Virus record (IMG/VR): IMGVR_UViG_3300042261_002385
Coordinates: 62,001 to 126,000 of that record
Length of the DNA stretch: 64,000 bases
Reading direction: 5' to 3' (one strand)
A program made the position numbers and the translations under genes. Positions 358 to 33,264 of this stretch are shown piece after piece. The notes under the pieces are model-generated. The model saw only the letters and a program-made list of their open reading frames with translations, searched no databases and was not told the DNA's origin. How positions within the stretch are numbered: position 1 is the first letter of the stretch; each line of letters opens with the position of its first letter.

Positions 358-364
358 AAATTAT

Positions 365-934
365 ATGAAACTATTTTTATTTTTGTTCTTACTTATTAGT
401 CTAAATGTTTTTAGTCAACACTCGTTTGAAATATGTGAAAATTCAAATACGTTTACATATTCAACCACAATTGACTTAAACGGAACAGTAGAATGGTTTT
501 TAAACGGTAGTTCAATTGGTCAGGGTCTTTCAATTGATATCACATATGATGAACCTGGAGAATTTCAATTAGTAGCAATGGGTTATAACGATTTAGGTTG
601 TCCAGGAACACCACAAGTTTTAGATATTATAGTTACTCAATGTGATCCACTTATTTATTGGGTTCCTAATTCATTCACACCTGATGGAAATGAATTTAAT
701 CAAACTTGGGGTCCTATATTGACAAGCGGTATTTCAGTTAATAATTTTTCACTAACAATTTATAATAGATGGGGAGCTATCATCTGGGAGTCCAAAGATG
801 TCAATACTAAATGGGATGGAACATATGGAGGTTTTTTAGTTCCAGATGGAACATACTCTTGGATTATGAAATTAGATATGATAGACAATGATGGTAAAAA
901 ATTAATTACCGGTCACGTTACAATCGTTAGATAA
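365..934 (+). CDS. Secreted protein with gliding-motility-associated C-terminal (T9SS type B sorting) domain
   Basis: N-terminal signal peptide; C-terminal VPNSFTPDGN..N..W...IYNRWG..IWES...WDGTY.G..VPDGTY...GHVTIVR. Confidence 0.85.
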   Translation: MKLFLFLFLLISLNVFSQHSFEICENSNTFTYSTTIDLNGTVEWFLNGSSIGQGLSIDITYDEPGEFQLVAMGYNDLGCPGTPQVLDIIVTQCDPLIYWVPNSFTPDGNEFNQTWGPILTSGISVNNFSLTIYNRWGAIIWESKDVNTKWDGTYGGFLVPDGTYSWIMKLDMIDNDGKKLITGHVTIVR

Positions 935-935
935 G

Positions 936-1005
936 TGCCGTGTATGAGGTTCGAACTCACTTAGCCCACCTTATGAGAGTAGGTTCTTTTCCACTAAGCC
1001 ACGGC
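936..1005 (-). tRNA. tRNA-Met/Ile2 (CAT), possibly degenerate
   Basis: GCCGTG/CACGGC acceptor, CTACT-CTCATAA-GGTGG anticodon arm, GTGAG-TTCGAAC-CTCAT T arm; positions 7-9 appear missing. Confidence 0.6.
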
Positions 1006-1011
1006 TTTTAT

Positions 1012-1338
1012 TTAATGACTATGTATTACATTTTCTATTTTCTCATACAGTTTTATTTTCGGTAATACACCAACTTGTCTATCAACTACTTCACCATTTT
1101 TAAAAAAGATTATTGTAGGAATTCCTCTTACCCCATATTTATCAGGACTGATTGGATTCTCATCAATGTTTACTTTATAAACCACAATTTTTTCTTCTAA
1201 ATCATTTGAAGCTTCTTCTAATGCTGGAGCTAATGCTTTACAAGGATTACACCAATCGGCCCAAAAATCGACTAAAATTAATTTATCTGAACTTTTAATT
1301 ATATCTTGAAAGTTATCATCTGTTATACTTGCTACCAT
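1012..1338 (-). CDS. trxA: Thioredoxin
   Basis: DFWADWCNPCK active site, GIPT motif. Confidence 0.92.
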   Translation of the reverse strand: MVASITDDNFQDIIKSSDKLILVDFWADWCNPCKALAPALEEASNDLEEKIVVYKVNIDENPISPDKYGVRGIPTIIFFKNGEVVDRQVGVLPKIKLYEKIENVIHSH

Positions 1339-1369
1339 ATCTAAATTTTTTCTTTTATATATTTAATTT

Positions 1370-1458
1370 TGGTACTTCTGGTCGGACTCGAACCGACACG
1401 GACACAATGTCCAAGGGATTTTAAGTCCCTCGCGTGCTACCAATTTCGCCACAGAAGC
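1370..1458 (-). tRNA. tRNA-Leu (TAA)
   Basis: AGGGA-CTTAAAA-TCCCT arm, long variable arm, encoded CCA. Confidence 0.93.
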
Positions 1459-1464
1459 TTGTTG

Positions 1465-1547
1465 TACCCTGGGAGAGACTCGAACTCTCACGCCTTTCGG
1501 CACCAGATCCTAAATCTGGCGTGTGCTACCAATTTCACCACCAAGGT
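1465..1547 (-). tRNA. tRNA-Leu (TAG)
   Basis: CCAGA-TTTAGGA-TCTGG arm, long variable arm. Confidence 0.93.
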
Positions 1548-1557
1548 AAGTAATTTG

Positions 1558-1631
1558 AGCATCCTGCCAGATTCGAACTGGCGTCTCTGGGTTACAAATC
1601 CAGAATAATTGACCAACTATACGAAGGATGC
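1558..1631 (-). tRNA. tRNA-Thr (TGT)
   Basis: GCATCCT/AGGATGC acceptor; CTGGA-TTTGTAA-CCCAG arm. Confidence 0.85.
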
Positions 1632-1638
1632 AATTTTG

Positions 1639-1712
1639 AGACACTGGTCGGATTCGAACCGACATACCACAGTTTTGCAGACTGGGACCTAAAGCCATTC
1701 AGACACAGTGTC
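1639..1712 (-). tRNA. tRNA-Cys (GCA)
   Basis: CAGT-CTGCAAA-ACTG arm, U73. Confidence 0.9.
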
Positions 1713-1718
1713 GTTTTG

Positions 1719-1793
1719 TTGGAATGATAGGACTTGAACCTACGACCTCCACGGTATCAGCGTGGCGCTCTCGACCAACTGAGCTACATTCCA
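1719..1793 (-). tRNA. tRNA-Ile (GAT)
   Basis: CCACG-CTGATAC-CGTGG arm. Confidence 0.92.
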
Positions 1794-1800
1794 ATTTTTG

Positions 1801-1865
1801 AGGTCAGTATGGGTCTCGAACCCATGACTCGCTTGCGTCCCACTATGAAGCCTTTTATAGTGACC
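1801..1865 (-). ncRNA. Short tRNA-like RNA or pseudo-tRNA without a recognisable anticodon arm
   Basis: GGTCA/TGACC acceptor and ATGGG-TTCGAGA-CCCAT T arm intact; middle part is not a cloverleaf. Confidence 0.5.
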
Positions 1866-1874
1866 AACCATTTG

Positions 1875-1945
1875 TACCCCGAAGTGGGTTCGAACCACTG
1901 CCATCTCCATGTAAAAGAGATACGCTACCATTACGCCATCGGGGC
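1875..1945 (-). tRNA. tRNA-Val (TAC)
   Basis: TCTCT-TTTACAT-GGAGA arm. Confidence 0.9.
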
Positions 1946-1953
1946 TTTTTTTG

Positions 1954-2025
1954 CGGACTGAGAGAATTACGATATCTCGACCTCAACCTTAACAGGGTTT
2001 TGCTCTGCCTCTGAGCTACCAGTCC
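1954..2025 (-). tRNA. tRNA-Asn (GTT), atypical T loop ATCGTAA
   Basis: AACC-CTGTTAA-GGTT arm, G73. Confidence 0.85.
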
Positions 2026-2030
2026 TTTTG

Positions 2031-2112
2031 TACCGAGAGAGAGACTCGAACTCTCACGCCTTTCGAACACCGGCTTCTTAGACCGGCGTGTCTACCATTC
2101 CACCACCTCGGC
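2031..2112 (-). tRNA. tRNA-Leu (AAG)
   Basis: CCGGT-CTAAGAA-GCCGG arm, long variable arm, A73. Confidence 0.9.
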
Positions 2113-2121
2113 ATTTATTCG

Positions 2122-2194
2122 TAGCTCCTACTGGATTCGAACCAGTATCTTCGCTTTAGAAGAGCGACGTCCTGTCCAATTGAACGAAGGAGCC
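2122..2194 (-). tRNA. tRNA-Arg (TCT)
   Basis: TCGCT-CTTCTAA-AGCGA arm. Confidence 0.9.
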
Positions 2195-2205
2195 ATATTA
2201 TTTTG

Positions 2206-2290
2206 TCGGTAGAGTGGGATTTGAACCCACGTCGTGATTTCTCACCTAGTGTATCAGACTAGTCCCTGAAGACCGCTCGGGTATCTACCG
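2206..2290 (-). tRNA. tRNA with Ile (GAT) anticodon and a long variable arm
   Basis: CGGTAGA/TCTACCG acceptor; CTAGT-CTGATAC-ACTAG arm; GTGA-GAAA-TCAC variable arm. Confidence 0.85.
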
Positions 2291-2824
2291 TAATCTTTCT
2301 AACCTTTTTTCTTCTTCTATATTATAATGTATTTCCCCATGGCAATTTCTACACACTAAAATACATTTATCAACTTCATTTTTTAATTTTTCAAAAGAAT
2401 GAGTTTTCCCACTTACTGAAAAATCTTTTTCTTTTGGGTTTCTATGATGAAATTCTAAAGATGATATACATTTATTATATCCACATAATTCACATTCACC
2501 ACCTTTATATTCAACTAGTCTAATCTTAACTCTTCTTCTCCATTCAATTACACTTTGAGAATTAGATTTTGATTCACTATAACTTCTATCTTTATACTTT
2601 TTGACAGTACTTATAGAAACGTTAAACTTTTCTGAAGCTTCTTTTATTGTATGTGTTTTACAATAGTTTTTTAACTCTTCTATATCAAATCTTCTTTCAG
2701 AATTTAATCCATATCTTTTACAATGATAACTAATTGTTGATTTTGATATGTTTAATTCTTTTTTTATTTCATCATAACTTTTACCTTCTTTTCTTAATTT
2801 TATTACTTTATCTTTAGTTTCCAT
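2285..2824 (-). CDS. HTH-containing HNH endonuclease (free-standing homing endonuclease-like)
   Basis: Two HTH-like segments, then CELCG...LEFHH...CILVCRNCHGEIH. Confidence 0.8.
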   Translation of the reverse strand: METKDKVIKLRKEGKSYDEIKKELNISKSTISYHCKRYGLNSERRFDIEELKNYCKTHTIKEASEKFNVSISTVKKYKDRSYSESKSNSQSVIEWRRRVKIRLVEYKGGECELCGYNKCISSLEFHHRNPKEKDFSVSGKTHSFEKLKNEVDKCILVCRNCHGEIHYNIEEEKRLERLR

Positions 2825-2888
2825 AGGTCTTAATTATTTTATGTTAAATATTAAAAATTAAAACCTTTTTAACCAAAGTGGTTAATTG

Positions 2889-2963
2889 CGGACTTGATAG
2901 GATTCGAACCTACTATCTTCTGCTTAACAGGCAGTAGCTTATGACCACTTAAGCTTCAAGTCC
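2889..2963 (-). tRNA. tRNA-Asn (GTT)
   Basis: CTGC-CTGTTAA-GCAG arm, G73. Confidence 0.9.
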
Positions 2964-2984
2964 TTTTATTAACTATATCAAAAC

Positions 2985-3015
2985 AAAAAACCCTCAGATT
3001 TTCATCTGAGGGTTC
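2985..3015 (-). terminator. Intrinsic terminator (attenuator 1) upstream of tRNA cluster 1
   Basis: GAACCCTCAGAT-GAAA-ATCTGAGGGTTT followed by a U tract. Confidence 0.9.
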
Positions 3016-3045
3016 GTGTTATATTTAGTTATTATACGTCACATT

Positions 3046-3159
3046 TTACGAGACAAATTTTCTAAATAGATAGGAACCCTCAGAAGGTCTAATATTACAT
3101 AACGTAATATTCACCACATTGAGTGTCAGGTTCATCATATTTGTCGTATTTGTTCTCAT
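3046..3159 (-). CDS. Leader peptide 1, MRTNTTNMMNLTLNVVNITLCNIRPSEGSYLFRKFVS
   Basis: 37-aa ORF; first 24 codons use only the amino acids of the cluster-1 tRNAs; contains TCTGAGGGTTC, complementary to the terminator 5' arm. Confidence 0.85.
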   Translation of the reverse strand: MRTNTTNMMNLTLNVVNITLCNIRPSEGSYLFRKFVS

Positions 3160-3216
3160 TGTTGTTATATATTATAAATTATTAGTCTCTTTTGACTTTT
3201 TTGTCATTATTTTATA

Positions 3217-3248
3217 CAAATTTAAATAAAAGTTTTAATTCTACCAAA
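3217..3248 (-). promoter_or_regulatory. Bacteroidota-type housekeeping promoter
   Basis: TTTG-N20-TAAATTTG upstream of leader 1. Confidence 0.75.
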
Positions 3249-3259
3249 TTTAATCTAAA

Positions 3260-4615
3260 TTATTTTACTGGTGTCTCAGTTTTTTCACCAGGCTTAGCAA
3301 CTTCTGGTTTTTCACCAGGTTTCACAGGTGTCTGTTCTACAGGTTTTTCACCAGGCTTAGTCTCACTTTCTTTATGACCAGGTTTCAAATGATGAATTGT
3401 GTGATAAACGTGATAAATAGCAAATCCTATAGCAGCAACTGTAAGTAAAACTTTTATTGTTTTTCCAATTGGATCAGTCTCAGCATACAAATTAAAAGCG
3501 GCTAAAAACCATTTTTTCATATCCATAGCTGCTTCCATTCCCGGAAAAGGTGTAGCTCCTACAAGTAAACAAACATCACCAACTATACCAACTAAAGCAC
3601 CTACAATAGCACCTAAAGCTACAAATTTGAATGGACCGGGTCCACCAGCCCATTTAGATATCTTAGAAACAAAAGTAAGAGAAGCGTTTGTAACAACTTC
3701 ACCTACTAGTTCTGCAACTTTAACAATCAGTCCAAAAAAAGAAGATAAAACTCTAAGAATAAGTCTTCCCCACCATATTAGTTTTTTTCCAGTAGTTACC
3801 TCAGCATCTGGACTTTTTTCAATAAAACTCTTAAACCAATCAAGTAAAGAGTCGAATGCTGAAGACTTAACAGCCTTCACAACCTCACCTTCTTTAAGTA
3901 GTTGATAATCATAAAAATGTTTGATTAAATCATCACTCTCCGTATGTTCAATATATGATGAACTTTCTTCTACCTGATTCTCTGTCTCTTGTAGTTCTTT
4001 AAGTGTGGTTGATTCTATATTTCCTTCTCCAGATTGTAATGTAGCTGAAACTTTATTACCTAAATTAGGATTTATTTGGTTAGATTGTAATGCATCTTTT
4101 TTTTCATCACCAGTTCTTAAAAAGTTAAAAACACTTTTCAAATTCGGAATTTCTTGTTCAACTGTTTTCTTATCAGTAGATTCAATTTTTTTAGCTATAG
4201 CATCTTTTTTATCAACAGATAGCTTCTTTCCAAGATTAAGAGCTCCATTTAACATCCCCAAGAAAACATTCTTACAAAAAGTCATGATACCTTTTACAAA
4301 CCAAGAAATACCATCAATAATTTTCTTAACACGCTCTTTAAATGAATTTACAAATTTCTCTCCTTTATCTTTGACATAAGCAACTGCTTTATCTAAAAAC
4401 TGCCATTCTTCTTTTAATAGGTTGAATTTGGATTCTAAAAGTTCATTTTGGATAAACTTTTTTTCAGTATTATCAAAAATTTCAGATTTTAAACATAAAT
4501 TCCAAAAATTATCTGACAGTTCTTCATAAATTTGACCTTTTATTATAGAAGCCTGTTTATTTGCATGTTTTTTTTGTTCTTTAACAAAAGATTTATAATT
4601 TCTTACATAACTCAT
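3260..4615 (-). CDS. Hypothetical membrane protein with C-terminal KPGEKP repeats
   Basis: Long ORF with hydrophobic C-terminal helices; ATG at 4615 preferred. Confidence 0.7.
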   Translation of the reverse strand: MSYVRNYKSFVKEQKKHANKQASIIKGQIYEELSDNFWNLCLKSEIFDNTEKKFIQNELLESKFNLLKEEWQFLDKAVAYVKDKGEKFVNSFKERVKKIIDGISWFVKGIMTFCKNVFLGMLNGALNLGKKLSVDKKDAIAKKIESTDKKTVEQEIPNLKSVFNFLRTGDEKKDALQSNQINPNLGNKVSATLQSGEGNIESTTLKELQETENQVEESSSYIEHTESDDLIKHFYDYQLLKEGEVVKAVKSSAFDSLLDWFKSFIEKSPDAEVTTGKKLIWWGRLILRVLSSFFGLIVKVAELVGEVVTNASLTFVSKISKWAGGPGPFKFVALGAIVGALVGIVGDVCLLVGATPFPGMEAAMDMKKWFLAAFNLYAETDPIGKTIKVLLTVAAIGFAIYHVYHTIHHLKPGHKESETKPGEKPVEQTPVKPGEKPEVAKPGEKTETPVK

Positions 4616-4653
4616 ATTTGTAAACAACTTTTTGTTATATATTAAATACCCGA

Positions 4654-4818
4654 TTTATTTTTCTGAGCCTTTAATAATTTCCAATTCTCAACATCTCTTT
4701 CCATAAACTTTCTTATCCTTTTAGAGAAATTCATTGAGTTTTCATCACAAAATTGTTTATATTCTTCTAATAATTTTTCAGGGATTCTAATTGAAATCAT
4801 TTTATCTTTGGTTGCCAT
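4654..4818 (-). CDS. Ribbon-helix-helix (CopG/Arc-like) DNA-binding protein, 54 aa (absent from the ORF track)
   Basis: MATKDKMISIRIPEKLLEEYKQFCDENSMNFSKRIRKFMERDV...: beta strand ISIRI plus two helices. Confidence 0.75.
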
Positions 4819-4866
4819 AAATTATACATTTTTATACATATATATCTTTGTATGGACATTCCCTCA

Positions 4867-5421
4867 CTAAATATCTCTCAAAAAGTTAAAATCGGTTATA
4901 TCAAGTTTTAATCCTATGTTAAATCTGTTGAAAAAATCAACTAGTTTTTGTAGACTTTTATCTTCGATAGCAAAAATCGTATGTGTTGGATCGAATTTCG
5001 AATTATAACTTGTGTCTTGTATAACATGAACGCCTTTTCTACTTATAGAAAACTCAGACGCCATCATATCTCCAAATGTTATATCAACATCTAATCTCAT
5101 ATTTGGTATGTAACTACCAGGACTTCTATCATAGTCAAAAGTTCCTGATTTTATCACAGTAGTCTGGTCAATATGTTGTTCACCAGAATCATCTTTGACT
5201 AGATAAATATCAATTTCTAAAGTATCAGGAGCTAACCATCTGTTTATATCATAAGAGATTTGTAACATATCAGAGTTCAACATTACATTTCCTTTCTTAT
5301 ATTCCAATCTATCAATTCCATATTCCTCACCTTTCAAAACAACAATTGTTTCAGGTAATAAAACTTCCCATTTAGGATCATAAATACTAATATTCTCATT
5401 GAATCTACGAAGATATTTCAT
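4867..5421 (-). CDS. Hypothetical phage protein
   Basis: ORF with MKYLRRFNE N-terminus. Confidence 0.7.
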   Translation of the reverse strand: MKYLRRFNENISIYDPKWEVLLPETIVVLKGEEYGIDRLEYKKGNVMLNSDMLQISYDINRWLAPDTLEIDIYLVKDDSGEQHIDQTTVIKSGTFDYDRSPGSYIPNMRLDVDITFGDMMASEFSISRKGVHVIQDTSYNSKFDPTHTIFAIEDKSLQKLVDFFNRFNIGLKLDITDFNFLRDI

Positions 5422-5425
5422 TGCA

Positions 5426-6163
5426 TTATTTTAATTTTATCAAAATTGGTAAATGGTCAGAAAGAGAATTTCTATTTCCTTTGTAAGGATAAACTAAAAC
5501 TTTGCTCTCGACAATTGTGTACTTTTTTTCAACAAAAAAATGATCATAATTATTTTCTGAAACAGAACCATCTCTTTTAAGAGACGTTCCTAAACCACAT
5601 AGTGGTGAATTAAAGTTTTTTAACATAGGAACATAAACTAGATGTTTACAGCTTAAATTGAAGTCTCCACAAATCAAACCATCGGTATATTGATATAATT
5701 TAGAAACTTCGTTTTGAGGAGTTTTGCTTGTTGGAACCAAATGAACTTCTCTAATCACTAAGTCTTTTTTATTAATTTTGAAAGACGCCACAAAAGGTTC
5801 TCTATCAATTGAGTCCTGTAAAGAAGCATCTAATTTAGAATAATTTAATGTTATTGATTTTCTATAAAGATAAGCATATCTTTCAGCACCTTCCCCTGTA
5901 GTTCTTGGTGAAATTACATAATTATAATCTAATATTTTTGCCATTTTCATAATACAAGAGTCACCATAAGGACCAGTGATGACCTCTTGAATAGCTACTA
6001 TGTCAGCACCTGATGATTTAATTACAGTTGTTAATCCAGTAATGACCGAATCTCTTTTAAATTTAGTTTCACCTAAATTTTGTATGTTCCAAGAAAGGAT
6101 TGTTTGTGAATAAGATATGTATGATAATAAGATAATTATAAATAAGAAAATGTTTTTCATCAA
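5426..6163 (-). CDS. Secreted endonuclease/exonuclease/phosphatase (DNase I-like)
   Basis: Signal peptide; SWNI, AIQEV, GDFN, YDH, SDHLP motifs. Confidence 0.9.
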   Translation of the reverse strand: MMKNIFLFIIILLSYISYSQTILSWNIQNLGETKFKRDSVITGLTTVIKSSGADIVAIQEVITGPYGDSCIMKMAKILDYNYVISPRTTGEGAERYAYLYRKSITLNYSKLDASLQDSIDREPFVASFKINKKDLVIREVHLVPTSKTPQNEVSKLYQYTDGLICGDFNLSCKHLVYVPMLKNFNSPLCGLGTSLKRDGSVSENNYDHFFVEKKYTIVESKVLVYPYKGNRNSLSDHLPILIKLK

Positions 6164-6176
6164 AAGTGTTTTCTTT

Positions 6177-6332
6177 CTATTTATTAATTTTCACATTTGA
6201 TTTTAATTTTCTTTTTAATCTTTTTATCATTTTAACTATTAAATCTTCTTTATCTTTTTTGTCTGATTCCAAATATCTAAAATTTCCTTTACTACTTTTA
6301 ATCTCACCTGTTATTATTACTCTTTCTTCCAT
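6177..6332 (-). CDS. Small hypothetical protein (51 aa)
   Basis: ATG-to-TAG ORF filling the gap in a minus-strand run. Confidence 0.5.
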   Translation of the reverse strand: MEERVIITGEIKSSKGNFRYLESDKKDKEDLIVKMIKRLKRKLKSNVKINK

Positions 6333-6347
6333 CTCATTAAATTTTTT

Positions 6348-6530
6348 TTATATAAAACCTTTTATTGTATTATTTTCTATTCTGAACACTACAAAATCTT
6401 CTAATTTACATTTGTTTAAAATGTCACTTTGGTCTAATACCTTACCCTGAGGAAAAGCAGTAAGTGAACCATCAACATTTTTGTAGATGATATAAAGCTT
6501 ACTATCTGATTTTCTTTTAAAGATTGTCAT
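6348..6530 (-). CDS. Small hypothetical protein
   Basis: ORF track. Confidence 0.55.
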   Translation of the reverse strand: MTIFKRKSDSKLYIIYKNVDGSLTAFPQGKVLDQSDILNKCKLEDFVVFRIENNTIKGFI

Positions 6531-6547
6531 TCATTATATTATTTTTG

Positions 6548-6620
6548 AGCGAGAGATGAGGTTCGAACTCACGACCCCCACCTTGGCAAGGTGGCGCTCT
6601 ACCAGCTGAGCTACTCTCGC
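6548..6620 (-). tRNA. tRNA-Gly (GCC)
   Basis: CCACC-TTGCCAA-GGTGG arm, U73. Confidence 0.93.
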
Positions 6621-6630
6621 TTATTTGATG

Positions 6631-6706
6631 TGGACCAGATGGGAATCGAACCCACCACACCTACCTTGCAAGGGTAAGTCGCCGAAGCCTTGGAACATGC
6701 TAGCCC
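6631..6706 (-). tRNA. tRNA-Ala (TGC)
   Basis: G3:U70 pair; TTACC-CTTGCAA-GGTAG arm; atypical D arm. Confidence 0.88.
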
Positions 6707-6710
6707 GTAG

Positions 6711-6782
6711 TGCGGGTAACCAGAATCGAACTGACATCACCGACTTGGAAGGCCGGTGTAATAACCATTATACGATACCCGC
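6711..6782 (-). tRNA. tRNA-Gly (TCC)
   Basis: CCGGC-CTTCCAA-GTCGG arm. Confidence 0.92.
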
Positions 6783-6793
6783 ATGTATTTCTG

Positions 6794-6874
6794 TCGGCAA
6801 GGTGGGATTCGAACCCACGTTTTCAACTTCCCGCTACGTGTATAGAATGTATAAGATTCCAACGGTACTTGCCG
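6794..6874 (-). tRNA. Non-canonical tRNA-like RNA with a TAT (Ile AUA) anticodon-like loop
   Basis: Perfect CGGCAAG/CTTGCCG acceptor and T arm; GGAAT-CTTATAC-ATTCT hairpin sits where the D arm should be. Confidence 0.6.
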
Positions 6875-6875
6875 A

Positions 6876-6909
6876 AATAAAAAAACCCAGTCCTTTTGAG
6901 ACTGGGTTT
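6876..6909 (-). terminator. Intrinsic terminator (attenuator 2)
   Basis: AAACCCAGTCT-CAAAA-GGACTGGGTTT plus U tract, directly upstream of cluster 2. Confidence 0.88.
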
Positions 6910-6930
6910 ATAAATATGTAAAGTCAAATA

Positions 6931-7014
6931 TTACATAACATAACTCAGTCTATAGACTTGACGCCCCGCGCCTGTCGCTATAAATCCAACTGATATGTTT
7001 GTAAAATTTTTCAT
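6931..7014 (-). CDS. Leader peptide 2, MKNFTNISVGFIATGAGRQVYRLSYVM
   Basis: ATA, GGA, ATA, GCG, GGC, GCG, GGG control codons; AGACTGAGTT antiterminator. Confidence 0.78.
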   Translation of the reverse strand: MKNFTNISVGFIATGAGRQVYRLSYVM

Positions 7015-7067
7015 TGTTTCTATTATATTTGTTATATATAAAAAGTTTTATTTCTTCTTTTATTTTG

Positions 7068-7150
7068 TTGGAAGGGAGGGATTCGAACCCCCGTACTCGT
7101 AAGAGAACAGATTTACAGTCTGTCGGTTTTAGCCACTCACCCACCTTCCA
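7068..7150 (-). tRNA. tRNA-Tyr (GTA)
   Basis: ACAGA-CTGTAAA-TCTGT arm, long variable arm. Confidence 0.93.
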
Positions 7151-7161
7151 ATAAAGCTTTG

Positions 7162-7233
7162 TAGTCCATACGGGAATCGAACCCGTCTCTCCACCGTGAA
7201 AGGGTGGTGTCCTAGCCGATAGACGAATGGACC
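7162..7233 (-). tRNA. tRNA-Glu (TTC)
   Basis: CCACC-CTTTCAC-GGTGG arm. Confidence 0.93.
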
Positions 7234-7252
7234 GTTTATCTGTTTTGTTTTA

Positions 7253-7284
7253 CAAAGATAAGGTAACTTTTCTAATCTACCAAA
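7253..7284 (-). promoter_or_regulatory. Bacteroidota-type promoter between attenuator 3 and tRNA-Glu
   Basis: TTTG-N20-TATCTTTG. Confidence 0.7.
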
Positions 7285-7293
7285 TCTTTAAAT

Positions 7294-7323
7294 AAAAAAA
7301 CCCAATCTTTTCAGACTGGGTTT
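7294..7323 (-). terminator. Intrinsic terminator (attenuator 3)
   Basis: AAACCCAGTCT-GAAA-AGATTGGGTTT plus U tract. Confidence 0.88.
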
Positions 7324-7343
7324 GTTAAAAGTAAATCAAATAT

Positions 7344-7415
7344 TTACAACACGCAAACTAGTCCGATTGGATTACTACCCTCGGCTTCATAATAATATGT
7401 TGTTATCATTTTCAT
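7344..7415 (-). CDS. Leader peptide 3, MKMITTYYYEAEGSNPIGLVCVL
   Basis: TAT-TAT-TAT-GAA-GCC-GAG run upstream of tRNA-Glu and tRNA-Tyr. Confidence 0.82.
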   Translation of the reverse strand: MKMITTYYYEAEGSNPIGLVCVL

Positions 7416-7436
7416 GCTTTGATTAATTATTTTTAG

Positions 7437-7509
7437 TAGCGGGGGTAGGACTCGAACCTACGACCTCTAGGTTATGAGCCTAGCGAGCTACCAACTACTC
7501 CACCCCACA
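7437..7509 (-). tRNA. Initiator-type tRNA-fMet (CAT)
   Basis: U1:U72 mismatch, fMet-like D arm, CTAGG-CTCATAA-CCTAG arm. Confidence 0.88.
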
Positions 7510-7593
7510 ATGTGTTATTGTATGTGTATATATAAAAAAAGTTTTCTCTATTTCTTTATTTTAAAGGATTTTTCAACTTAATATATAATTTGT

Positions 7594-8061
7594 ATGAGAT
7601 ATTTAACAGATTTTGGTCAATTTTTATATGAAGAACTACAATCTTATCAGTTTGAACTAATTTCAGACGATCGATTCATTTACAAATACTCATTTCAAGA
7701 TGTTGTAGGTAATAAATATTTAGTTGAATTTAAAAATATTCCTATAAGAAAAGTTGGTCAATTAAGTCACGTTTATGAATTAATGTATTATGTAGAAGAT
7801 GAGGGACAATATTCAGTTTATAAAATTGTAAATGTAAATCCTTATAGAGTTTTGAAAACTGTTTTTGGGGATATCTTAAATGATTTCACAAAAAGATGTC
7901 AGTGGGCTAAAATTATTTATTTTGTTGGATTAGCCAAAGAAAAAGAAAAACAATATGTCACATCAAGAACTAGAATATATAAAAGATATTTAGATATGAA
8001 TCCTGTTTCTGGCTTTAGAATTCAACAATCAGGAAATGCAATACAATTAACAAGAATATGA
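7594..8061 (+). CDS. Hypothetical phage protein
   Basis: ORF after an AATATATA motif. Confidence 0.7.
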   Translation: MRYLTDFGQFLYEELQSYQFELISDDRFIYKYSFQDVVGNKYLVEFKNIPIRKVGQLSHVYELMYYVEDEGQYSVYKIVNVNPYRVLKTVFGDILNDFTKRCQWAKIIYFVGLAKEKEKQYVTSRTRIYKRYLDMNPVSGFRIQQSGNAIQLTRI

Positions 8062-8459
8062 AACACTTAAAAAAGATATTTGAAAGTAGTGAAGATGATA
8101 AAAGATACATCGAAGAATGTTTCTTAGAGATATCAGAGAATCCAAACTTCGAAGTTGATGATTTACTTGAAGTAGAATTGACCGAAAAAGTAGATTATCC
8201 AATTTCAGTATATAAATTACACATAGAATTTGGTAAAAATATAAGTTTACCTAATCCAGTAAATTCTAATCTTTATATTGGAATGGTAAAAACTGATTTA
8301 GATTTCTTAAGAATGAAGAATGAAAAAATATCCGAGTTATTAAATGATATTGAAGTTGCTATAAATAGAGTTGGCGAAAAATTTCCTAATTCAGAATGTC
8401 AAATCTATGCGAATAGAAGAGAAGAGATTGATATAGTAATAATTGTAAAAAATAATTAA
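8058..8459 (+). CDS. Hypothetical phage protein
   Basis: ORF with MKHLKKIFES N-terminus. Confidence 0.7.
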   Translation: MKHLKKIFESSEDDKRYIEECFLEISENPNFEVDDLLEVELTEKVDYPISVYKLHIEFGKNISLPNPVNSNLYIGMVKTDLDFLRMKNEKISELLNDIEVAINRVGEKFPNSECQIYANRREEIDIVIIVKNN

Positions 8460-8464
8460 ATATT

Positions 8465-8830
8465 ATGGAAAGACCGCAAACAAGAATTATAGACCAACAA
8501 CACGTTGAATCAGAAAGAGAAGTTACTGGATGGGAAGCGGAACAAATACTAAGAAAATACGGACACGAACCTAAACACTATTCATCAATTCCAGGTAACA
8601 CACCTCAGAGTCCTAATCATAATTTAACTTTTGAAGAAATGATTGCACAAGAAGAAGCTAAACGTAAAGAGGAAATGATGAGAAATCAACAACAAATGAA
8701 TGGTCCTAAACCATTGACTTTTGATGGCGGCCGTGGTTATGATTCTGAGATTAGGTATTCGACTGATGAAGATACTGGATTTGGTTTTAAGATTGAGATA
8801 TCTACTGATATGAAAATTCCAAAATATTAA
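8465..8830 (+). CDS. Hypothetical protein
   Basis: ORF track. Confidence 0.65.
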   Translation: MERPQTRIIDQQHVESEREVTGWEAEQILRKYGHEPKHYSSIPGNTPQSPNHNLTFEEMIAQEEAKRKEEMMRNQQQMNGPKPLTFDGGRGYDSEIRYSTDEDTGFGFKIEISTDMKIPKY

Positions 8831-9435
8831 ATCTTTTGAAAAACTACAATATCATCGATTTGAATTTTCTTTACACCTTGTAATTCTGTAAGAACTCCAT
8901 GTAGGCCTAATCCAGCGTTTTTGTTTTCAATAAGAATTGAACCCGGTGCAATCTCTGAAATAATCTTATTATATAACAGTGTAAGTTTTTCAGTTGTCTT
9001 GAAAGGAGTATAGGTATAGACAATGTTATATTTGGAATAGTCTTGATTCATTATATCATCTTCAATTACAGTAAGATTACTATCCCAATATTGAAGAAGT
9101 TTTTCGTTTAGAAAATCAATATAAACTTTTTGTTTCTCAATTCCATAGAATTTAAAAGTCTTACCATCTTCAAATAATTTTGACTGTTGATACATATCAA
9201 AAAGAGCTGTTCCTAATCCTATTCCACAATCACAAATATGATTTTCTTGTAGTAGTAATCCTCTTTCTTCAAGTCTCTGAAGAAGAAATATATTTAATTC
9301 AATATTAGATAGAACATAGTGCCACTCTTCATTTTGGATAAACTCTGGTTTTGAACTATCAAAATCAGTCCAAAGAGTTTTAGAATCCTGAAAATATTTG
9401 ACTAAGTTTTCATTCGGTGTAACTTCTTGTGCCAT
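8827..9435 (-). CDS. Class I SAM-dependent methyltransferase-like protein
   Basis: ICDCGIGLG motif I, GIE, DDI; paralog at 43335. Confidence 0.7.
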   Translation of the reverse strand: MAQEVTPNENLVKYFQDSKTLWTDFDSSKPEFIQNEEWHYVLSNIELNIFLLQRLEERGLLLQENHICDCGIGLGTALFDMYQQSKLFEDGKTFKFYGIEKQKVYIDFLNEKLLQYWDSNLTVIEDDIMNQDYSKYNIVYTYTPFKTTEKLTLLYNKIISEIAPGSILIENKNAGLGLHGVLTELQGVKKIQIDDIVVFQKI

Positions 9436-9519
9436 ATAAGTTATATCTATTTTTATATTTAAGTTGTCTATAAAAGAACTCTCTAAAGATAATATATAGT
9501 GTATAAAATAATTTATCTA

Positions 9520-12423
9520 ATGAGCAGTATAGCTTTTGGTAGCACATATTCTTTTTTAACTGCAGCTACGCCATCATCTGGATGGATCATTGGTTTTGAT
9601 ACAGATGGTGTATTAAAGCAAATTGACACATCTGGAAACATTATACTAATAGGTGGTGGACCTACTGCTGGAAATTTAGCAACATATTCTATTTCACAAG
9701 TCTTAACTGTTGGTAATAATACTCAGAATCGTTCCATTATTATGGGAACAGCTACTAACATCAAAAGTGCAAACGGCGGTGGTAAAATTGAGTTAGACCG
9801 TTTAAGTGGAACAAATTCAGTTTTAATATCGACTGATGATAGTTCACAATCTGAAAGTTACTTATTGATGAGGAATGATTATGCAAGACTGTCTACTGAT
9901 TCATCTAAACAGATGATTGATTTGAATAAAACTGATAATGACCTGCGAATTTATAATAACAATGCTGGGTCAATATCAATAGGAGTAGATACAGGTTCTT
10001 TAGTTTACGGCCAGCTAGATGAAATTAAGATATCTTATAACTCTTCATCAACAGCTTCTACTGGTAATTTTGATAAAAATGCCGTTTTAATTGGTTCAAA
10101 AAACTCAAAAATACTTTCAGGAGTTGTTAACACAGTAGTTTTAGGAGGTCAAAATTTTACCGCCTCTAATTCGAATTCAATTTATGTTCCGGATATTTAT
10201 TTACAAAATCAAAAAGGAATAAAGTCGACTAATACAAATGAAGTATTCTATTTGAATGATAATAACGGATACACATTGTTGGACAGAAACTCAGGTAACT
10301 TAGATAATTCTTGGTTACTTATGGCAACTGACTATAATTCTACTTATCAAGCTTATGTTGAAATTGGTGTAAACTCAGACTCCGGATATGGAAATGATTC
10401 TCAAATCTATATCTATAACTCTAAAGGACCATCATATAGTTATCAAGCATATTCAAGTATTACTGTCGGTAAAAATCTTCTTAGATTTGCTTCTCAAGAT
10501 GTCGATGGTGGGTTAGATACAGTTAGAATAAATTTATCAGCTGGTAATTCTATAACTGTTGATGGATCGACTTCTTCTTTTAAAGGTATGGAGTATAATG
10601 ATGATTATTCTCTAAATTTTGTGACACATTCACTTGTAGATAAACAATATGTAGATAGTCAATTTACAGGATTTAATTTAGATGTTGTCCTAGCAGCTGG
10701 AAATAACTCACAGGCTAACGACATCGTTATGGGCACAGCTACAAGTATAAAATCAGCTAATGGTGGAGGTCAAATAGATTTAGACTTATCAGGAAATGCT
10801 GATGAAGTTGTAATATCAACAGATGGTGGAGCTCAAGCAGAATCATTTATTTCTTTGACTGCAACTGACTTATTAATTCAATCAGTTGGTAATATAACTT
10901 TGGATGGTCAAGGTCTAAGAGCATCATCAAACGACTCTTTAGGTATTGTATATCAAGCTGATTATTCGGCTACTTTTATAACACAATCATTAGTGAATAA
11001 AGGATATGTAGACTCAGGAACATCTTCTTTATGGTCAGCAATAAACTCAATTAATACTGATTATATCTCAGAAATAATACCTGGGACAGGTCTTACAGGC
11101 GGTGGAACTTATGGAACGATAAACATAGATATTGAGATAGGTAATGGTTTACAATTTGTAACTAACTCGATTTCATTAGGTGGAACTCTTTCACAAGATA
11201 CAATCATAATAGGAGATTCATTTAATTTCACTTTAGATGAATTAACAAACATAAGTTTAAGTGCGTCTGGAATCATTGACAATTATGCAACAGACTTGTC
11301 GGGATTCTTCGGAGAAACTTATTTAGATTCAAATGTTTTTGAGGCTAAAGTAGGAACCATACATGGTAACACATTTTCGAGAGTAGTAATTCAGAATCAC
11401 GTTTTACTTCTTGAAAACCAAAATGAAATCGGAGATTCGACTAGTTACGGTTTATACTTAAACGAACAAACTATTGGTGACGGTTCAACTGATAATAGAT
11501 TAATAATTAATGACGAAGTTTCTCAGAAAGGTTTAGTTTACTCACAAGATTATACATCTAATTTCACAACATATTCATTAGTTAGTAAAGGATATGCTGA
11601 TTCTTTATTAAGTAGAGTTGAAAATGGTTTAACACAGAGTCCAAACGGAAATATTATGTTAGGTGGAAGTCTGAACACAGCAGTTGTAATTGAAGGATTT
11701 ACTAATAATGTGTATTTCTCAGACGTTGGTAGATTTTCAGTAACTGCGTCTGGTTTTATAGACAAAATGGTTTACGCACCGTCAACAAATACTAGTCAAC
11801 AATTTAATAATGGTGACCAATACTACACAAGAGTGGATGATGCTTTAGGAACTTATTCACTAATAAATTTAGATCCGAGTAGAGTAGATGTTGAAAATTT
11901 AGGTGACGATGGATACCTTACTAAATTCACTATATATTCATCTGGTCAGAGTATAGGTGACCAATCGTCAAATAATAGATTTATAGTGACTGATGATAGT
12001 TATCAAAAAGGAATAGTTTATTCTGATGACTACACTGCAAACTTTACTACTTACTCATTAGTTACTAAACAATATGTTGATTCAAAAAAACCGTATAAAG
12101 TTTATGTAGCTCTTCTTAAACAATCCGGAACCTCAGCACCAACAGATATTGTATTAGAGAACACCTTTGGAATAACAGCTACTTTTAGCTACACTACAAC
12201 AGGTAATTACGAGTTGTATATGACAGGTCAATTTACTTATCAAAAAACATACATAGTAAATGGAATTGCTGATCAAAACCCAATAGGTGGGGATTTTGCC
12301 TTATTTGCAACTCAATACTTTAATACTGATAAAATAATACTTACTACCCAAGATATAGGTGGAACTGGACCAATGAACGGTTTACTAAACGACACATCAA
12401 TTGAAATCAGAGTGTATCCGTAA
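9520..12423 (+). CDS. Repeat-rich virion fibre/adhesin-like protein
   Basis: Four DYxxxFxTxSLVxKxY(V/A)DS repeats and duplicated MGTATxIKSANGGG modules. Confidence 0.65.
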   Translation: MSSIAFGSTYSFLTAATPSSGWIIGFDTDGVLKQIDTSGNIILIGGGPTAGNLATYSISQVLTVGNNTQNRSIIMGTATNIKSANGGGKIELDRLSGTNSVLISTDDSSQSESYLLMRNDYARLSTDSSKQMIDLNKTDNDLRIYNNNAGSISIGVDTGSLVYGQLDEIKISYNSSSTASTGNFDKNAVLIGSKNSKILSGVVNTVVLGGQNFTASNSNSIYVPDIYLQNQKGIKSTNTNEVFYLNDNNGYTLLDRNSGNLDNSWLLMATDYNSTYQAYVEIGVNSDSGYGNDSQIYIYNSKGPSYSYQAYSSITVGKNLLRFASQDVDGGLDTVRINLSAGNSITVDGSTSSFKGMEYNDDYSLNFVTHSLVDKQYVDSQFTGFNLDVVLAAGNNSQANDIVMGTATSIKSANGGGQIDLDLSGNADEVVISTDGGAQAESFISLTATDLLIQSVGNITLDGQGLRASSNDSLGIVYQADYSATFITQSLVNKGYVDSGTSSLWSAINSINTDYISEIIPGTGLTGGGTYGTINIDIEIGNGLQFVTNSISLGGTLSQDTIIIGDSFNFTLDELTNISLSASGIIDNYATDLSGFFGETYLDSNVFEAKVGTIHGNTFSRVVIQNHVLLLENQNEIGDSTSYGLYLNEQTIGDGSTDNRLIINDEVSQKGLVYSQDYTSNFTTYSLVSKGYADSLLSRVENGLTQSPNGNIMLGGSLNTAVVIEGFTNNVYFSDVGRFSVTASGFIDKMVYAPSTNTSQQFNNGDQYYTRVDDALGTYSLINLDPSRVDVENLGDDGYLTKFTIYSSGQSIGDQSSNNRFIVTDDSYQKGIVYSDDYTANFTTYSLVTKQYVDSKKPYKVYVALLKQSGTSAPTDIVLENTFGITATFSYTTTGNYELYMTGQFTYQKTYIVNGIADQNPIGGDFALFATQYFNTDKIILTTQDIGGTGPMNGLLNDTSIEIRVYP

Positions 12424-12424
12424 G

Positions 12425-12510
12425 CGGAGAGCAGAATACTCGAAACCCATGCAATTGAACGCACCCAACGCTTTCCAGGCGTGACTGATGACCTCATCAG
12501 TTTACTCTCC
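12425..12510 (-). tRNA. tRNA-Ser (GGA), 8/4 fold
   Basis: ACGC-CTGGAAA-GCGT arm; 8-bp acceptor, 7-bp D stem with 4-nt loop, 4-bp T stem. Confidence 0.82.
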
Positions 12511-12517
12511 AATTTAG

Positions 12518-12603
12518 CGGAGAACAGAGGAATTGAACCCCACACAAATGAACGTGCAACTCGCTTAGCAGGCGGTCCTAATCACCAGATTAGTTTATTC
12601 TCC
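12518..12603 (-). tRNA. tRNA-Ser (GCT), 8/4 fold
   Basis: CGC-CTGCTAA-GCG; CTAATC-TGGT-GATTAG D arm; G73. Confidence 0.82.
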
Positions 12604-12609
12604 ATTTAG

Positions 12610-12693
12610 CGGAAGAAGTAGGTGTCGATCCCAATACCTTTCAGTACCCACAGTTTTCAAGACTGGGTTGCAGGCCGCTGCAATTCATCTTCC
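12610..12693 (-). tRNA. tRNA-Ser (TGA), 8/4 fold
   Basis: CAGT-CTTGAAA-ACTG; TTGCAG-CGGC-CTGCAA D arm; G73. Confidence 0.82.
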
Positions 12694-12699
12694 AATTTG

Positions 12700-12772
12700 T
12701 GGTTCTAGAAGTATTCGAAACCTCACTTGATCGTTCGTAGCGACCTGTCCTGTCCAATTAGACGATAGAACC
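12700..12772 (-). tRNA. tRNA-Arg (ACG)
   Basis: GGTCG-CTACGAA-CGATC arm. Confidence 0.9.
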
Positions 12773-12780
12773 AAATTTAA

Positions 12781-12908
12781 CGGGGATGGTTGGACTCGAA
12801 CCAACGACCTTATAATTTCAAAATATACGAAGTAACTCTTTCAATCAACACTCTTACGAGGTAAAGTTTCAAAAGAGATAGTTTTCTCTACCACTGAGCT
12901 AAATCCCC
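12781..12908 (-). ncRNA. 128-nt tRNA-like RNA with a large structured insertion in the anticodon domain
   Basis: Near-canonical acceptor, D arm (GCTCAGTGGTAGAG) and T arm (GTTGG-TTCGAGT-CCAAC) flank about 55 extra nt. Confidence 0.7.
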
Positions 12909-12919
12909 AATAACATTTG

Positions 12920-12994
12920 TGACTCCGGTGGGACTCGAACCCACATATCCCTGATTAAGAGTCAGGTCCGGAAACCAATTACGGATACGAAGTC
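12920..12994 (-). tRNA. tRNA-Lys (CTT)
   Basis: CCTGA-CTCTTAA-TCAGG arm. Confidence 0.88.
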
Positions 12995-12999
12995 ATTTG

Positions 13000-13087
13000 T
13001 GCACCCAGAAGGACTCGAACCTTCAACGGACTTTCGTCTACCCCTCGCATTAAAAGTGCGATGCTCTACCAATTGAGCCATAGGTGC
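13000..13087 (-). tRNA. tRNA-Lys (TTT) with long variable arm
   Basis: TCGCA-CTTTTAA-TGCGA arm; 20-nt variable region containing GAC-GAAA-GTC. Confidence 0.85.
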
Positions 13088-13100
13088 TTAATTACCTTAG

Positions 13101-13173
13101 TGACCCCGGCGAGAATCGAACTCGCGACCCCCTGGTTAAAAGCCAGGTGCTCTACCTACTAAGCTACGAAGTC
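13101..13173 (-). tRNA. tRNA-Lys (TTT)
   Basis: CCTGG-CTTTTAA-CCAGG arm. Confidence 0.93.
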
Positions 13174-13216
13174 AAATTTTTTCTATGTGATGACTTATAA
13201 CTTAGTAAGCCATCAC

Positions 13217-13240
13217 TTAGCGTTTTCGTTTAGTTTCCAT
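13217..13240 (-). CDS. Candidate mini leader ORF METKRKR
   Basis: ATG GAA ACT AAA CGA AAA CGC TAA after an A-rich tract, followed by an 11-bp hairpin, upstream of the Lys/Arg tRNAs. Confidence 0.45.
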   Translation of the reverse strand: METKRKR

Positions 13241-13258
13241 TTTCTTTTTTATTTTTAG

Positions 13259-13329
13259 CACGTCGCCTAGGAATTGAACCCAGCCATCGAGGTTTTGGAG
13301 ACCTGACCGACACCTTGTCTGTGCGACGT
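13259..13329 (-). tRNA. tRNA-Trp (CCA), short D arm
   Basis: AGGT-CTCCAAA-ACCT arm, G73. Confidence 0.82.
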
Positions 13330-13336
13330 ATGTTTG

Positions 13337-13410
13337 GGTGAACGACGGGTTACGATCCCGCTACCTCTGGCTTCACAAACCAGCACTCTTCCGATTGAGC
13401 TACATTCACC
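13337..13410 (-). tRNA. tRNA-His (GTG)
   Basis: G-1:C73 pair; CTGGT-TTGTGAA-GCCAG arm; T loop ATCGTAA. Confidence 0.9.
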
Positions 13411-13415
13411 ATATA

Positions 13416-13487
13416 AACCCCACTTCACCAGGTTAACGGACTGGCTGCCATATGGGAGTGGGGGTCTCCTGTTATTCCAGGACTCCG
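13416..13487 (-). ncRNA. GC-rich structured RNA of unknown class, 3' of tRNA-Phe
   Basis: TCCTG/CAGGA, CCCCACT/AGTGGGG and CCAG/CTGG stems; possible ACGGA/TCCGT pseudoknot; strand inferred from context. Confidence 0.5.
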
Positions 13488-13560
13488 TGGAATGGGTGGG
13501 TATCGAGCCCACTCCTCTGGATTTTCAGTCCAGCGCAATTACCTAATCTGCCACCATTCC
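13488..13560 (-). tRNA. tRNA-Phe (GAA)
   Basis: CTGGA-CTGAAAA-TCCAG arm. Confidence 0.9.
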
Positions 13561-13573
13561 AATTTTTTTAAAT

Positions 13574-13607
13574 AAAAAAACCCGAACTTCTTTCGAGGTT
13601 CGGGTTT
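13574..13607 (-). terminator. Intrinsic terminator (attenuator 4)
   Basis: AAACCCGAACCTC-GAAA-GAAGTTCGGGTTT plus U tract. Confidence 0.9.
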
Positions 13608-13630
13608 AAATTATATTGTCTTTTATAAGT

Positions 13631-13732
13631 TTACACTTCTAAATTTGAGCAATACTCTTTTAGTACCGAACCAGTGGTGCTAAACCACGAAGTCGATTTA
13701 CTAAATGTGCTATGTTTGCGAATTGCTCTCAT
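13631..13732 (-). CDS. Leader peptide 4, MRAIRKHSTFSKSTSWFSTTGSVLKEYCSNLEV
   Basis: R/K/H/S/F/W-rich control region; GGTTCGG antiterminator. Confidence 0.85.
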   Translation of the reverse strand: MRAIRKHSTFSKSTSWFSTTGSVLKEYCSNLEV

Positions 13733-13789
13733 TTTTTTTATATATTGAATTGTTAAACTCTCTTTTTAAATTATTGTCATTATTCTATA

Positions 13790-13821
13790 CAAATGTAGAT
13801 AAAAGTTTTTAATCTACCAAA
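13790..13821 (-). promoter_or_regulatory. Bacteroidota-type promoter upstream of leader 4
   Basis: TTTG-N20-TACATTTG; closely similar to 3217-3248. Confidence 0.75.
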
Positions 13822-13835
13822 TTTTTTTGAAATTT

Positions 13836-14048
13836 TTATCCTCCATAAACATCAACTACTTTACCGTCTCTTACTCTGAAGTTGACTCTGTCCCCTCTAT
13901 TAGACATATCTAACATTTTTGGAACGCCATTTTCTTCTACTATTCTAGTGATAAAACCACCGTCATTAGCATACTTCGTAGCTTGTTCTAAAGTTTTTCC
14001 TACATATTCTTCTTTACTAATGATACCATTGTTTCTTAATTGTGCCAT
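13836..14048 (-). CDS. Small protein resembling the I78/potato-inhibitor-I protease inhibitor fold
   Basis: YVGKTLEQA...RIV..G...LDM...DRVNFRVRDGKVVDVYGG. Confidence 0.55.
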   Translation of the reverse strand: MAQLRNNGIISKEEYVGKTLEQATKYANDGGFITRIVEENGVPKMLDMSNRGDRVNFRVRDGKVVDVYGG

Positions 14049-14095
14049 AAGATTTAAATTATTTTTTTTAATATATAGTAAAAATTAATTTCTTT

Positions 14096-14362
14096 ATGCC
14101 ATCAAAATCGAAAACTCAGCAAAGATTAATGGGAGCAGCTTATGCTTATGCAACCGGTCAGAACAAAGATGTTCCAGAAACAGCCAAAGACGTTGCAAAA
14201 TCTTTTATTCAGAGTGAAACAAAGGGTCTAAAAAGTAAACCGGCTAAAGAAAGGGCTAAGAAGAGAGCTATAAAGAAACTCAGAGACTTTGCCAAAACTA
14301 AACACGACAAATTACCTGAAAGTGTTTCAGAACACATTATAACCAGATTTTCTGATTTCTAA
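14096..14362 (+). CDS. DUF3008-like small basic protein
   Basis: MPSKSKTQQRLMGAA...LRDFAKTKHDKLPE. Confidence 0.55.
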   Translation: MPSKSKTQQRLMGAAYAYATGQNKDVPETAKDVAKSFIQSETKGLKSKPAKERAKKRAIKKLRDFAKTKHDKLPESVSEHIITRFSDF

Positions 14363-14387
14363 CACTCATGAAACATCATGACTATAA

Positions 14388-14813: not shown

Positions 14814-14839
14814 TGTTTTAATTTTTCTTTATCAAATAA

Positions 14840-14993
14840 AAAGAGAGTTTTGGAACGCCTGTCAAGTATGGTCGGAACCCTAGAACCTGTAGTATCTTGA
14901 CTTTTAGTGACCTCATCACTTAGGATTACCTTTTAATGGGCTCATCACCCTTCTTTGAGCAGTGTTACCATTCTGCTCGGAAAATCTCTCTTT
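14840..14993 (-). ncRNA. Candidate multi-stem structured ncRNA
   Basis: Closing AAAGAGAG/CTCTCTTT helix enclosing five hairpins; non-coding. Confidence 0.5.
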
Positions 14994-33233: not shown

Positions 33234-33264
33234 AAAAAACCTCAGATTTTTCTGAGGTTTTTTT
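33234..33264 (+). terminator. Intrinsic terminator, bidirectional
   Basis: AAACCTCAGA-TTTT-TCTGAGGTTT with flanking A/T tracts. Confidence 0.8.

Follow-up and report, generated by a model that had tools for sequence, protein, structure and literature searches.

A candidate leader-peptide gate ahead of tRNA-Glu and tRNA-Tyr genes in a huge phage

Introduction

Leader-peptide attenuation is a textbook mechanism of amino-acid operons such as trp, his, pheA, leu, thr and ilv of enterobacteria. A short open reading frame (ORF) with clustered regulatory codons is followed by an intrinsic terminator, an antiterminator shares the 5' arm of this terminator, and a further upstream pairing blocks the antiterminator, so that slow decoding of the regulatory codons gives read-through. 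In T-box riboswitches, tRNA status likewise decides between a terminator and an antiterminator upstream of translation-related genes, although T-boxes bind uncharged tRNA directly and without an ORF. Clusters of phage-encoded tRNAs, on the other hand, are known from T4-like phages, mycobacteriophages and huge phages, for which roles in codon compensation or in evasion of tRNA-targeting defences have been proposed (PMC10264068).

Here, we analysed a stretch of 64,000 nucleotides (positions 62,001 to 126,000 of the IMG/VR virus record IMGVR_UViG_3300042261_002385), hereafter called the window, to which all coordinates refer unless a locus is named. An earlier note, based on the sequence alone, had proposed that a leader with a run of Tyr and Glu codons and a terminator gate the tRNA-Glu and tRNA-Tyr genes directly downstream. 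Our analysis confirms the anatomy and supports the attenuator reading. Dozens of related phage contigs were found to carry matching modules, which suggests that these phages make each tRNA on demand by sensing how fast its codons are read. In the literature that could be searched, which does not cover all journals, we found no description of leader-peptide control of tRNA genes, in phages or elsewhere, nor of this mechanism in a virus.

Results

ARAGORN finds 22 tRNA genes in the window, all of them on the minus strand within the first 14 kb. Read on that strand, the module of interest (module A) is composed of the following parts.

7545..7527, minus strand: conserved A/T-rich motif (AAAACTTTTTTTATATATA), a candidate phage-type promoter about 18 nt upstream of tRNA-Met
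7509..7436, minus strand: tRNA-Met(CAU), initiator-like, upstream of the gate
7415..7344, minus strand: leader ORF of 23 codons plus TAA (MKMITTYYYEAEGSNPIGLVCVL)
7403..7377, minus strand: segment 1, tentative, ACAACAU (7403..7397) and CCGAGGGU (7384..7377)
7397..7380, minus strand: control codons 7-12, UAU UAU UAU GAA GCC GAG
7366..7354, minus strand: segment 2, the antiterminator 5' strand UCGGACU-A-GUUUG
7324..7311, minus strand: segment 3, CAAAC-CC-AGUCUGA, the terminator 5' arm plus two loop bases
7323..7291, minus strand: intrinsic terminator with an 11-bp stem and GAAA loop (7323..7298) and a U7 tract (7297..7291)
7284..7253, minus strand: Bacteroidota-type promoter motif, about 19 nt before tRNA-Glu
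7233..7161, minus strand: tRNA-Glu(UUC), first gated gene
7150..7067, minus strand: tRNA-Tyr(GUA), second gated gene

The coordinates, codon run, terminator, tRNA identities and promoter given in the earlier note are thus all correct once the minus strand is read. tRNA-Met scores 62.9 bits against the Rfam tRNA model, and its orthologue in L056, a 262-kb contig described below (numbers with the prefix L denote the collected loci), has the GGG/CCC anticodon stem typical of initiators. A tRNA-Met lies just upstream of the Glu/Tyr leader in the window and in L002, L024, L056, L083, L086 and L100.

Two kinds of promoter motif accompany the array. The A/T-rich motif was matched 18 times in the window against 4.4 expected, recurs at 7046..7031 before the next leader, is nearly identical in L056 and is present before tRNA-Met or leaders in L002 and L024. 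In its general form, AAAACTTTTT(T)WWATATATA, it lies 18-25 nt before tRNA-Met or before leaders, also in L001. It is unlike the host promoter consensus and may be a promoter for a phage-directed polymerase, its promoter function being inferred. The motif at 7284..7253 matches TTTG-N20-TAnnTTTG (TTTG at -33, TAtcTTTG at -7), in line with the Bacteroidota primary-sigma consensus (PMC7366714). This pattern was matched 8 times against 3.0 expected, and three near-identical copies, all at tRNA modules, lie at 3248..3217, 7284..7253 and 13821..13790. The position behind the terminator is kept in L056, L357 and L362. In L357, an orthologue from a lake metagenome, the promoter is followed by an ATG-initiated ORF before tRNA-Glu, so this intergenic slot appears to accept insertions. 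In L056 (10545..10570) and L002 (about 11845..11820, minus strand), a conserved small hairpin, CCAAGTAACCCCTTGG, followed by a T-run lies just after a host-type promoter; it is absent from the window.

We next asked whether the RNA can adopt the alternative structures expected of an attenuator. The terminator alone folds at -15.2 kcal/mol (z -4.2). The nascent RNA that exists before the 3' arm of the terminator is made (7370..7309) folds, with 62% ensemble frequency, into an alternative structure in which segment 2, containing the GGACTAGTTT that the earlier note took as an imperfect antiterminator, pairs with segment 3 around a small hairpin spanning the stop codon. Its energy of -15.1 kcal/mol (z -3.24, 0 of 200 shuffles as good) is about that of the terminator, and the two structures share the terminator's 5' arm and exclude each other. 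By a duplex-only measure, however, the antiterminator of this copy is unremarkable (z -1.6; rank 1 of 8 in a swap test). In the minimum free energy and centroid folds of the untranslated full leader, ACAACAU (codons 5-7) pairs with GUGUUGU near the stop and CCGAGGGU (codons 11-13) pairs with AUCC..UCGG, the latter sequestering the start of the antiterminator strand. This anti-antiterminator remains tentative here, as this particular copy shows no cognate advantage (z +0.26).

The geometry fits the classical model. The control codons end 13 nt before segment 2, which lies 8-22 nt upstream of the stop codon. A ribosome with a Tyr or Glu codon in its A site reaches to about 7368, covering the upstream pairing partners and leaving 7366..7354 free, while a ribosome at UAA (7346..7344) covers roughly 7361..7332 and blocks the antiterminator but not the terminator, which starts 20 nt after the stop codon. 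No sign of stop-codon recoding was detected in the window, so the leader stop codons are read as stops.

The module is conserved in relatives. Window positions 6422-10367 are identical to locus L016, a stretch of a 436-kb IMG/VR contig, and are found in DNA runs from lake and other freshwater metagenomes. The nearest GenBank phage records, two uncultured phage genomes of 635 and 642 kb, both carry homologous Glu/Tyr and Ile/Gly leaders. L056, about 76% identical and syntenic over 10 kb, has the orthologous module with the same order of parts, including the promoter behind the terminator, and its leader reads MNKLATYYYEAEGLNPVGRVCVL. There, YYYEAEG is kept, with one synonymous TAT>TAC change in the control codons; the top of the terminator stem differs but stays paired, and the antiterminator strand changes only at unpaired positions or from a G-U pair to G-C. 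The region is 85% identical, against about 76% in the flanking genome. Further orthologues occur in lake metagenomes, and a second orthologous leader reads MKGLATYYYEAEGLNPVGRVCML. These observations argue against both chance and decay.

To test whether leader and tRNA content are linked beyond this single case, we scanned IMG/VR for the terminator pattern and applied an objective pipeline requiring a terminator, the longest ATG ORF ending within 90 nt upstream and ARAGORN tRNAs downstream, which gave 38 non-identical modules. In 37 of them the stop-to-terminator distance is 17-30 nt. The one exception is L015, where the longest-ORF rule mis-picked the ORF although the 18-aa MKMITQQQQQNNIREVDR ahead of three tRNA-Gln genes is the obvious leader; this error was left in the statistics. 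A second scan used only the recurrent N-terminal coding motif (MxTIxNI), with no terminator or tRNA in the query, and every short ORF it found that was followed by a terminator again had matching tRNAs downstream, such as FEFDFFAAEADF ahead of Phe, Glu, Asp and Ala and HQLSHSRRLSS ahead of Ser, His and Arg. In further examples, QQQQQ precedes Gln x3, SRSRSSRS precedes Ser/Arg x6, TTYTGKQYPQGKQTPTG precedes Pro, Gln, Tyr and Thr, YYKQYYYK precedes Lys, Lys and Tyr, RTHKHFSKSSKWF precedes Phe, Lys, Lys, His, Trp and Arg, LSVLCLCLLVLV precedes Cys, Val and Leu, and IATDIRTKGVK precedes Lys, Ile, Gly, Met, Asp, Thr, Val and Arg.

Shuffling which tRNA run goes with which leader gave z = 9.1 for the 38 modules of the first set and z = 13.6 for all 55 non-identical modules pooled from huge-phage contigs. 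The match exists only in the ORF frame (matched fraction 0.369 vs 0.108 and 0.122 in the other frames), peaks at codons 7-17 (0.42-0.71) and vanishes at both ends; the YYYEAE run of module A sits at codons 7-12. With one representative for each of 32 distinct tRNA sets, the matched fraction at codons 7-17 is 0.528 against 0.169 (z = 10.9, 0 of 50,000 permutations as high). The modules are related by descent, so these numbers overstate independence, but the number of distinct classes and the way leaders change with tRNA content within a class are hard to explain otherwise. In multi-codon families the leader codons are those the downstream anticodons can read (93 of 134 tested codons vs 61.7 expected, z = 5.7), most markedly AUA with tRNA-Ile(UAU), which points to sensing of tRNA isoacceptors rather than amino acids.

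The alternative pairings were also examined across the family. Leader segments complementary to the terminator's 5' arm are better than shuffles (mean z -2.46) and better than leaders from modules with different stems, the cognate leader binding its own terminator arm best in 21 of 38 modules. The covariation is clear, for example CCCUCAGA with UCUGAGGG, CCCGAAC with GGUUCGGG, and CCCUAGAA with UCUAGGGG. A second helix joins the N-terminal and C-terminal coding segments (mean z -2.35; cognate vs swapped z -1.47), which explains why both peptide ends look conserved, including third codon positions; in the Glu/Tyr class the register of this helix is specific, but its column-wise covariation is not significant. 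RNAalifold on 15 Glu/Tyr modules finds only the terminator, as expected for alternative structures, with compensatory changes at 3 of its 10 pairs. In L012, L018, L019, L078 and L083, a conserved element of about 100 nt lies between the Glu/Tyr terminator and the first tRNA-Glu. It begins GGGAGTATAACGTCA and ends GTTCGAATCC...ACTCCCACA, has a tRNA-like acceptor and T arm with a large insert, and is not called by ARAGORN.

Module A is one of four such modules in the window, the others (minus strand) being the following.

Module B: A/T-rich motif 7046..7031, leader ORF 7014..6931 (MKNFTNISVGFIATGAGRQVYRLSYVM), terminator 6909..6883
Module C: host-type promoter 13821..13790, leader ORF 13732..13631 (MRAIRKHSTFSKSTSWFSTTGSVLKEYCSNLEV), terminator 13607..13578
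Module D: host-type promoter 3248..3217, leader ORF 3159..3046 (MRTNTTNMMNLTLNVVNITLCNIRPSEGSYLFRKFVS), terminator 3015..2988

A strict scan finds only five strong intrinsic terminators in the 64 kb, three of them in modules A, B and D, whereas the terminator of module C was picked up only by a separate scan. The only other strong one is a 14-bp bidirectional hairpin with U-tracts on both strands at 33233-33264. No terminator separates tRNA-Tyr from leader B, so the gates are chained. Module B lies ahead of an odd tRNA-like sequence and two tRNA-Gly genes, and orthologous leaders in relatives precede tRNA-Ile(UAU), Gly and Ala and are rich in AUA, GGN and GCN codons. Module C lies ahead of tRNA-Phe, His, Lys x3, Arg(ACG) and long-arm tRNAs. 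In module D, an 11-nt perfect antiterminator copy (UCUGAGGGUUC) lies inside the ORF, and the first 24 residues use only M, R, T, N, L, V, I and C, which, apart from Met, are exactly the amino acids of the downstream tRNAs (Asn, Ile, Arg, Leu, Val, Cys, Thr) at 2963..1370. Leader D still 'lists' the tRNAs beyond a 179-aa ORF (2824..2288, minus strand) with helix-turn-helix domains and weak HNH/NUMOD1 signals, which sits between tRNA-Asn and the other ten tRNAs and looks like a homing-endonuclease insertion. The ORF right after the last tRNA (about 1336..1013, minus strand) reads, judged by eye from its translation only, like a thioredoxin with a WCNPC active-site motif. tRNA-sized or tRNA-like stretches not called by ARAGORN lie at 6865..6788, 6709..6625, 13486..13410, 13330..13259, 12910..12789, 12693..12430, 1870..1800 and 1005..936 (all minus strand). 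Among them are one with a CUUAUAC loop (possible tRNA-Ile UAU), one apparently interrupted by an intron-like insert, several that score as tRNA-Sec-like (probably long-arm Ser/Leu types) and a weak YrlA-like hit; some may be other small RNAs or ribozymes.

A cmscan against Rfam at E <= 1 over 1..15000 gave no leader, T-box or riboswitch hit, and only a meaningless 21.9-bit hit to an Enterococcus sRNA overlaps the region. A weak tmRNA hit on module B (6801-6990) was rejected, as it scores 18.2 bits against a gathering score of 47 and ARAGORN reports no tmRNA. The leader ORF has no Pfam family, and tblastn of a leader peptide against phage records gave no match, the query being too short. The same terminator pattern in 120 bacterial loci is never part of a leader-plus-tRNA module, and a Lak-B1 locus suggested by a weak blastn hit has no tRNAs and was a spurious lead.

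Discussion

We suggest, with reasonable confidence, that the region 7415..7291 (minus strand) is a ribosome-mediated transcription attenuator that gates the phage's own tRNA-Glu and tRNA-Tyr genes. This function, including translation of the leader, is inferred from sequence anatomy, alternative folds, conservation and leader/tRNA covariation, as public RNA runs compared with 5200-9200 matched only through short tRNA-like contigs of other organisms, and neither the polymerase that uses the AAAACTTTTTWWATATATA motif, the polymerase that transcribes the array nor the degree of transcription-translation coupling in the uncultured host is known. In the proposed mechanism, transcripts start upstream of tRNA-Met and run into the leader. 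If UAU and GAA/GAG codons are decoded slowly, because usable tRNA-Tyr or tRNA-Glu is scarce, the ribosome would stall at codons 7-12, cover segment 1 and leave segment 2 free to pair with segment 3, so that the terminator cannot form and RNA polymerase reads through into tRNA-Glu and tRNA-Tyr. If decoding is fast, the ribosome would reach UAA and occlude segment 2, the hairpin would form and transcription would end in the U-tract. The result would be a feedback loop that supplies these tRNAs on demand. The promoter at 7284..7253 could express Glu and Tyr tRNAs without passing the gate and may supply most of them in this genome, so the gate's contribution may be small here; the 'two-phase control' proposed in the earlier note is architecturally possible but remains speculation.

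But could the module be a mere relic? In most relatives the promoter precedes the leader, as it does in modules C and D, whereas here it follows the terminator, and this copy lacks the N-terminal MxTIxNI consensus of the family and has a weak 1:2 helix. The gate might therefore merely terminate the tRNA-Met transcript, with the Tyr/Glu codons as a fossil. We consider this unlikely, since the same architecture, an intact ORF, the control codons and both helices are kept in relatives about 76% identical, and the region is more conserved than its surroundings, whereas a fossil would decay. It is less likely still that the leader senses decoding but acts through Rho-type termination, RNase processing or stability of the tRNA precursor. 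The codon match does not by itself specify the output step, and some Glu/Tyr modules have weak antiterminator scores; however, the modules have a strong hairpin plus U-tract at a near-constant distance from the stop codon, and the complementary leader segments covary with the terminator stem sequence. That the small ORFs encode functional peptides merely co-transcribed with tRNAs is very doubtful: the family does show a recurrent N-terminal MxTIxNI and C-terminal hydrophobic/MS-type endings, but the middle of the peptide is not conserved as a sequence and changes with the tRNA set, third codon positions in the conserved ends are fixed (AAC ATA), the ends pair with each other as RNA, and no Pfam family matches. 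Chance, meaning an ordinary terminator after tRNA-Met with a spurious ORF, is equally improbable, for although 5 or more Tyr/Glu in some 6-residue window of a 22-aa peptide has P = 0.0013 and some pair of amino acids fills 5 of 6 positions in 17.5% of random 22-mers, the match is family-wide, frame-specific and position-specific across 32 tRNA sets and the ORF is conserved in orthologues.

A broader hypothesis, which we regard as somewhat more likely than not, is that huge phages of Bacteroidota-type hosts run a codon-resolved 'tRNA-stat', in which each sub-cluster of phage tRNA genes sits behind its own leader peptide, spelled in exactly the codons those tRNAs read, down to isoacceptor choice, and in which ribosome speed on each codon type sets transcription of the matching tRNAs. 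Gates would be chained along one array, here Met, the Tyr/Glu gate, Glu and Tyr, the Ile/Gly/Ala gate, and so on. Such a circuit would let the phage top up only the tRNAs that the host lacks or that host anticodon nucleases destroy. If the gates work as their anatomy implies, phage tRNA genes are feedback-regulated rather than simply expressed, the leaders give a direct read-out of which codons limit phage translation in an uncultured host, and they supply dozens of natural, compact, codon-specific sensors. This would bear on the long debate over why phages carry tRNAs, codon compensation versus escape from tRNA-targeting defences.

Compared with described phage tRNA arrays, the array analysed here shares the clustering of phage-encoded tRNAs, while leader-peptide gates have not been described for such arrays in the literature we could search. 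T-box riboswitches share the decision between terminator and antiterminator according to tRNA status, but no T-box or specifier features are present here. The closest resemblance is to the leader-peptide attenuators of enterobacterial amino-acid operons, whose logic appears to be repurposed to control tRNA genes. In contrast to these, the regulated genes are tRNAs and not enzymes, the control windows mix several amino acids and match a tRNA set down to anticodon choice, the elements are phage-encoded, there is no sequence or Rfam similarity, and the context has Bacteroidota-type promoters and no Shine-Dalgarno sequence.
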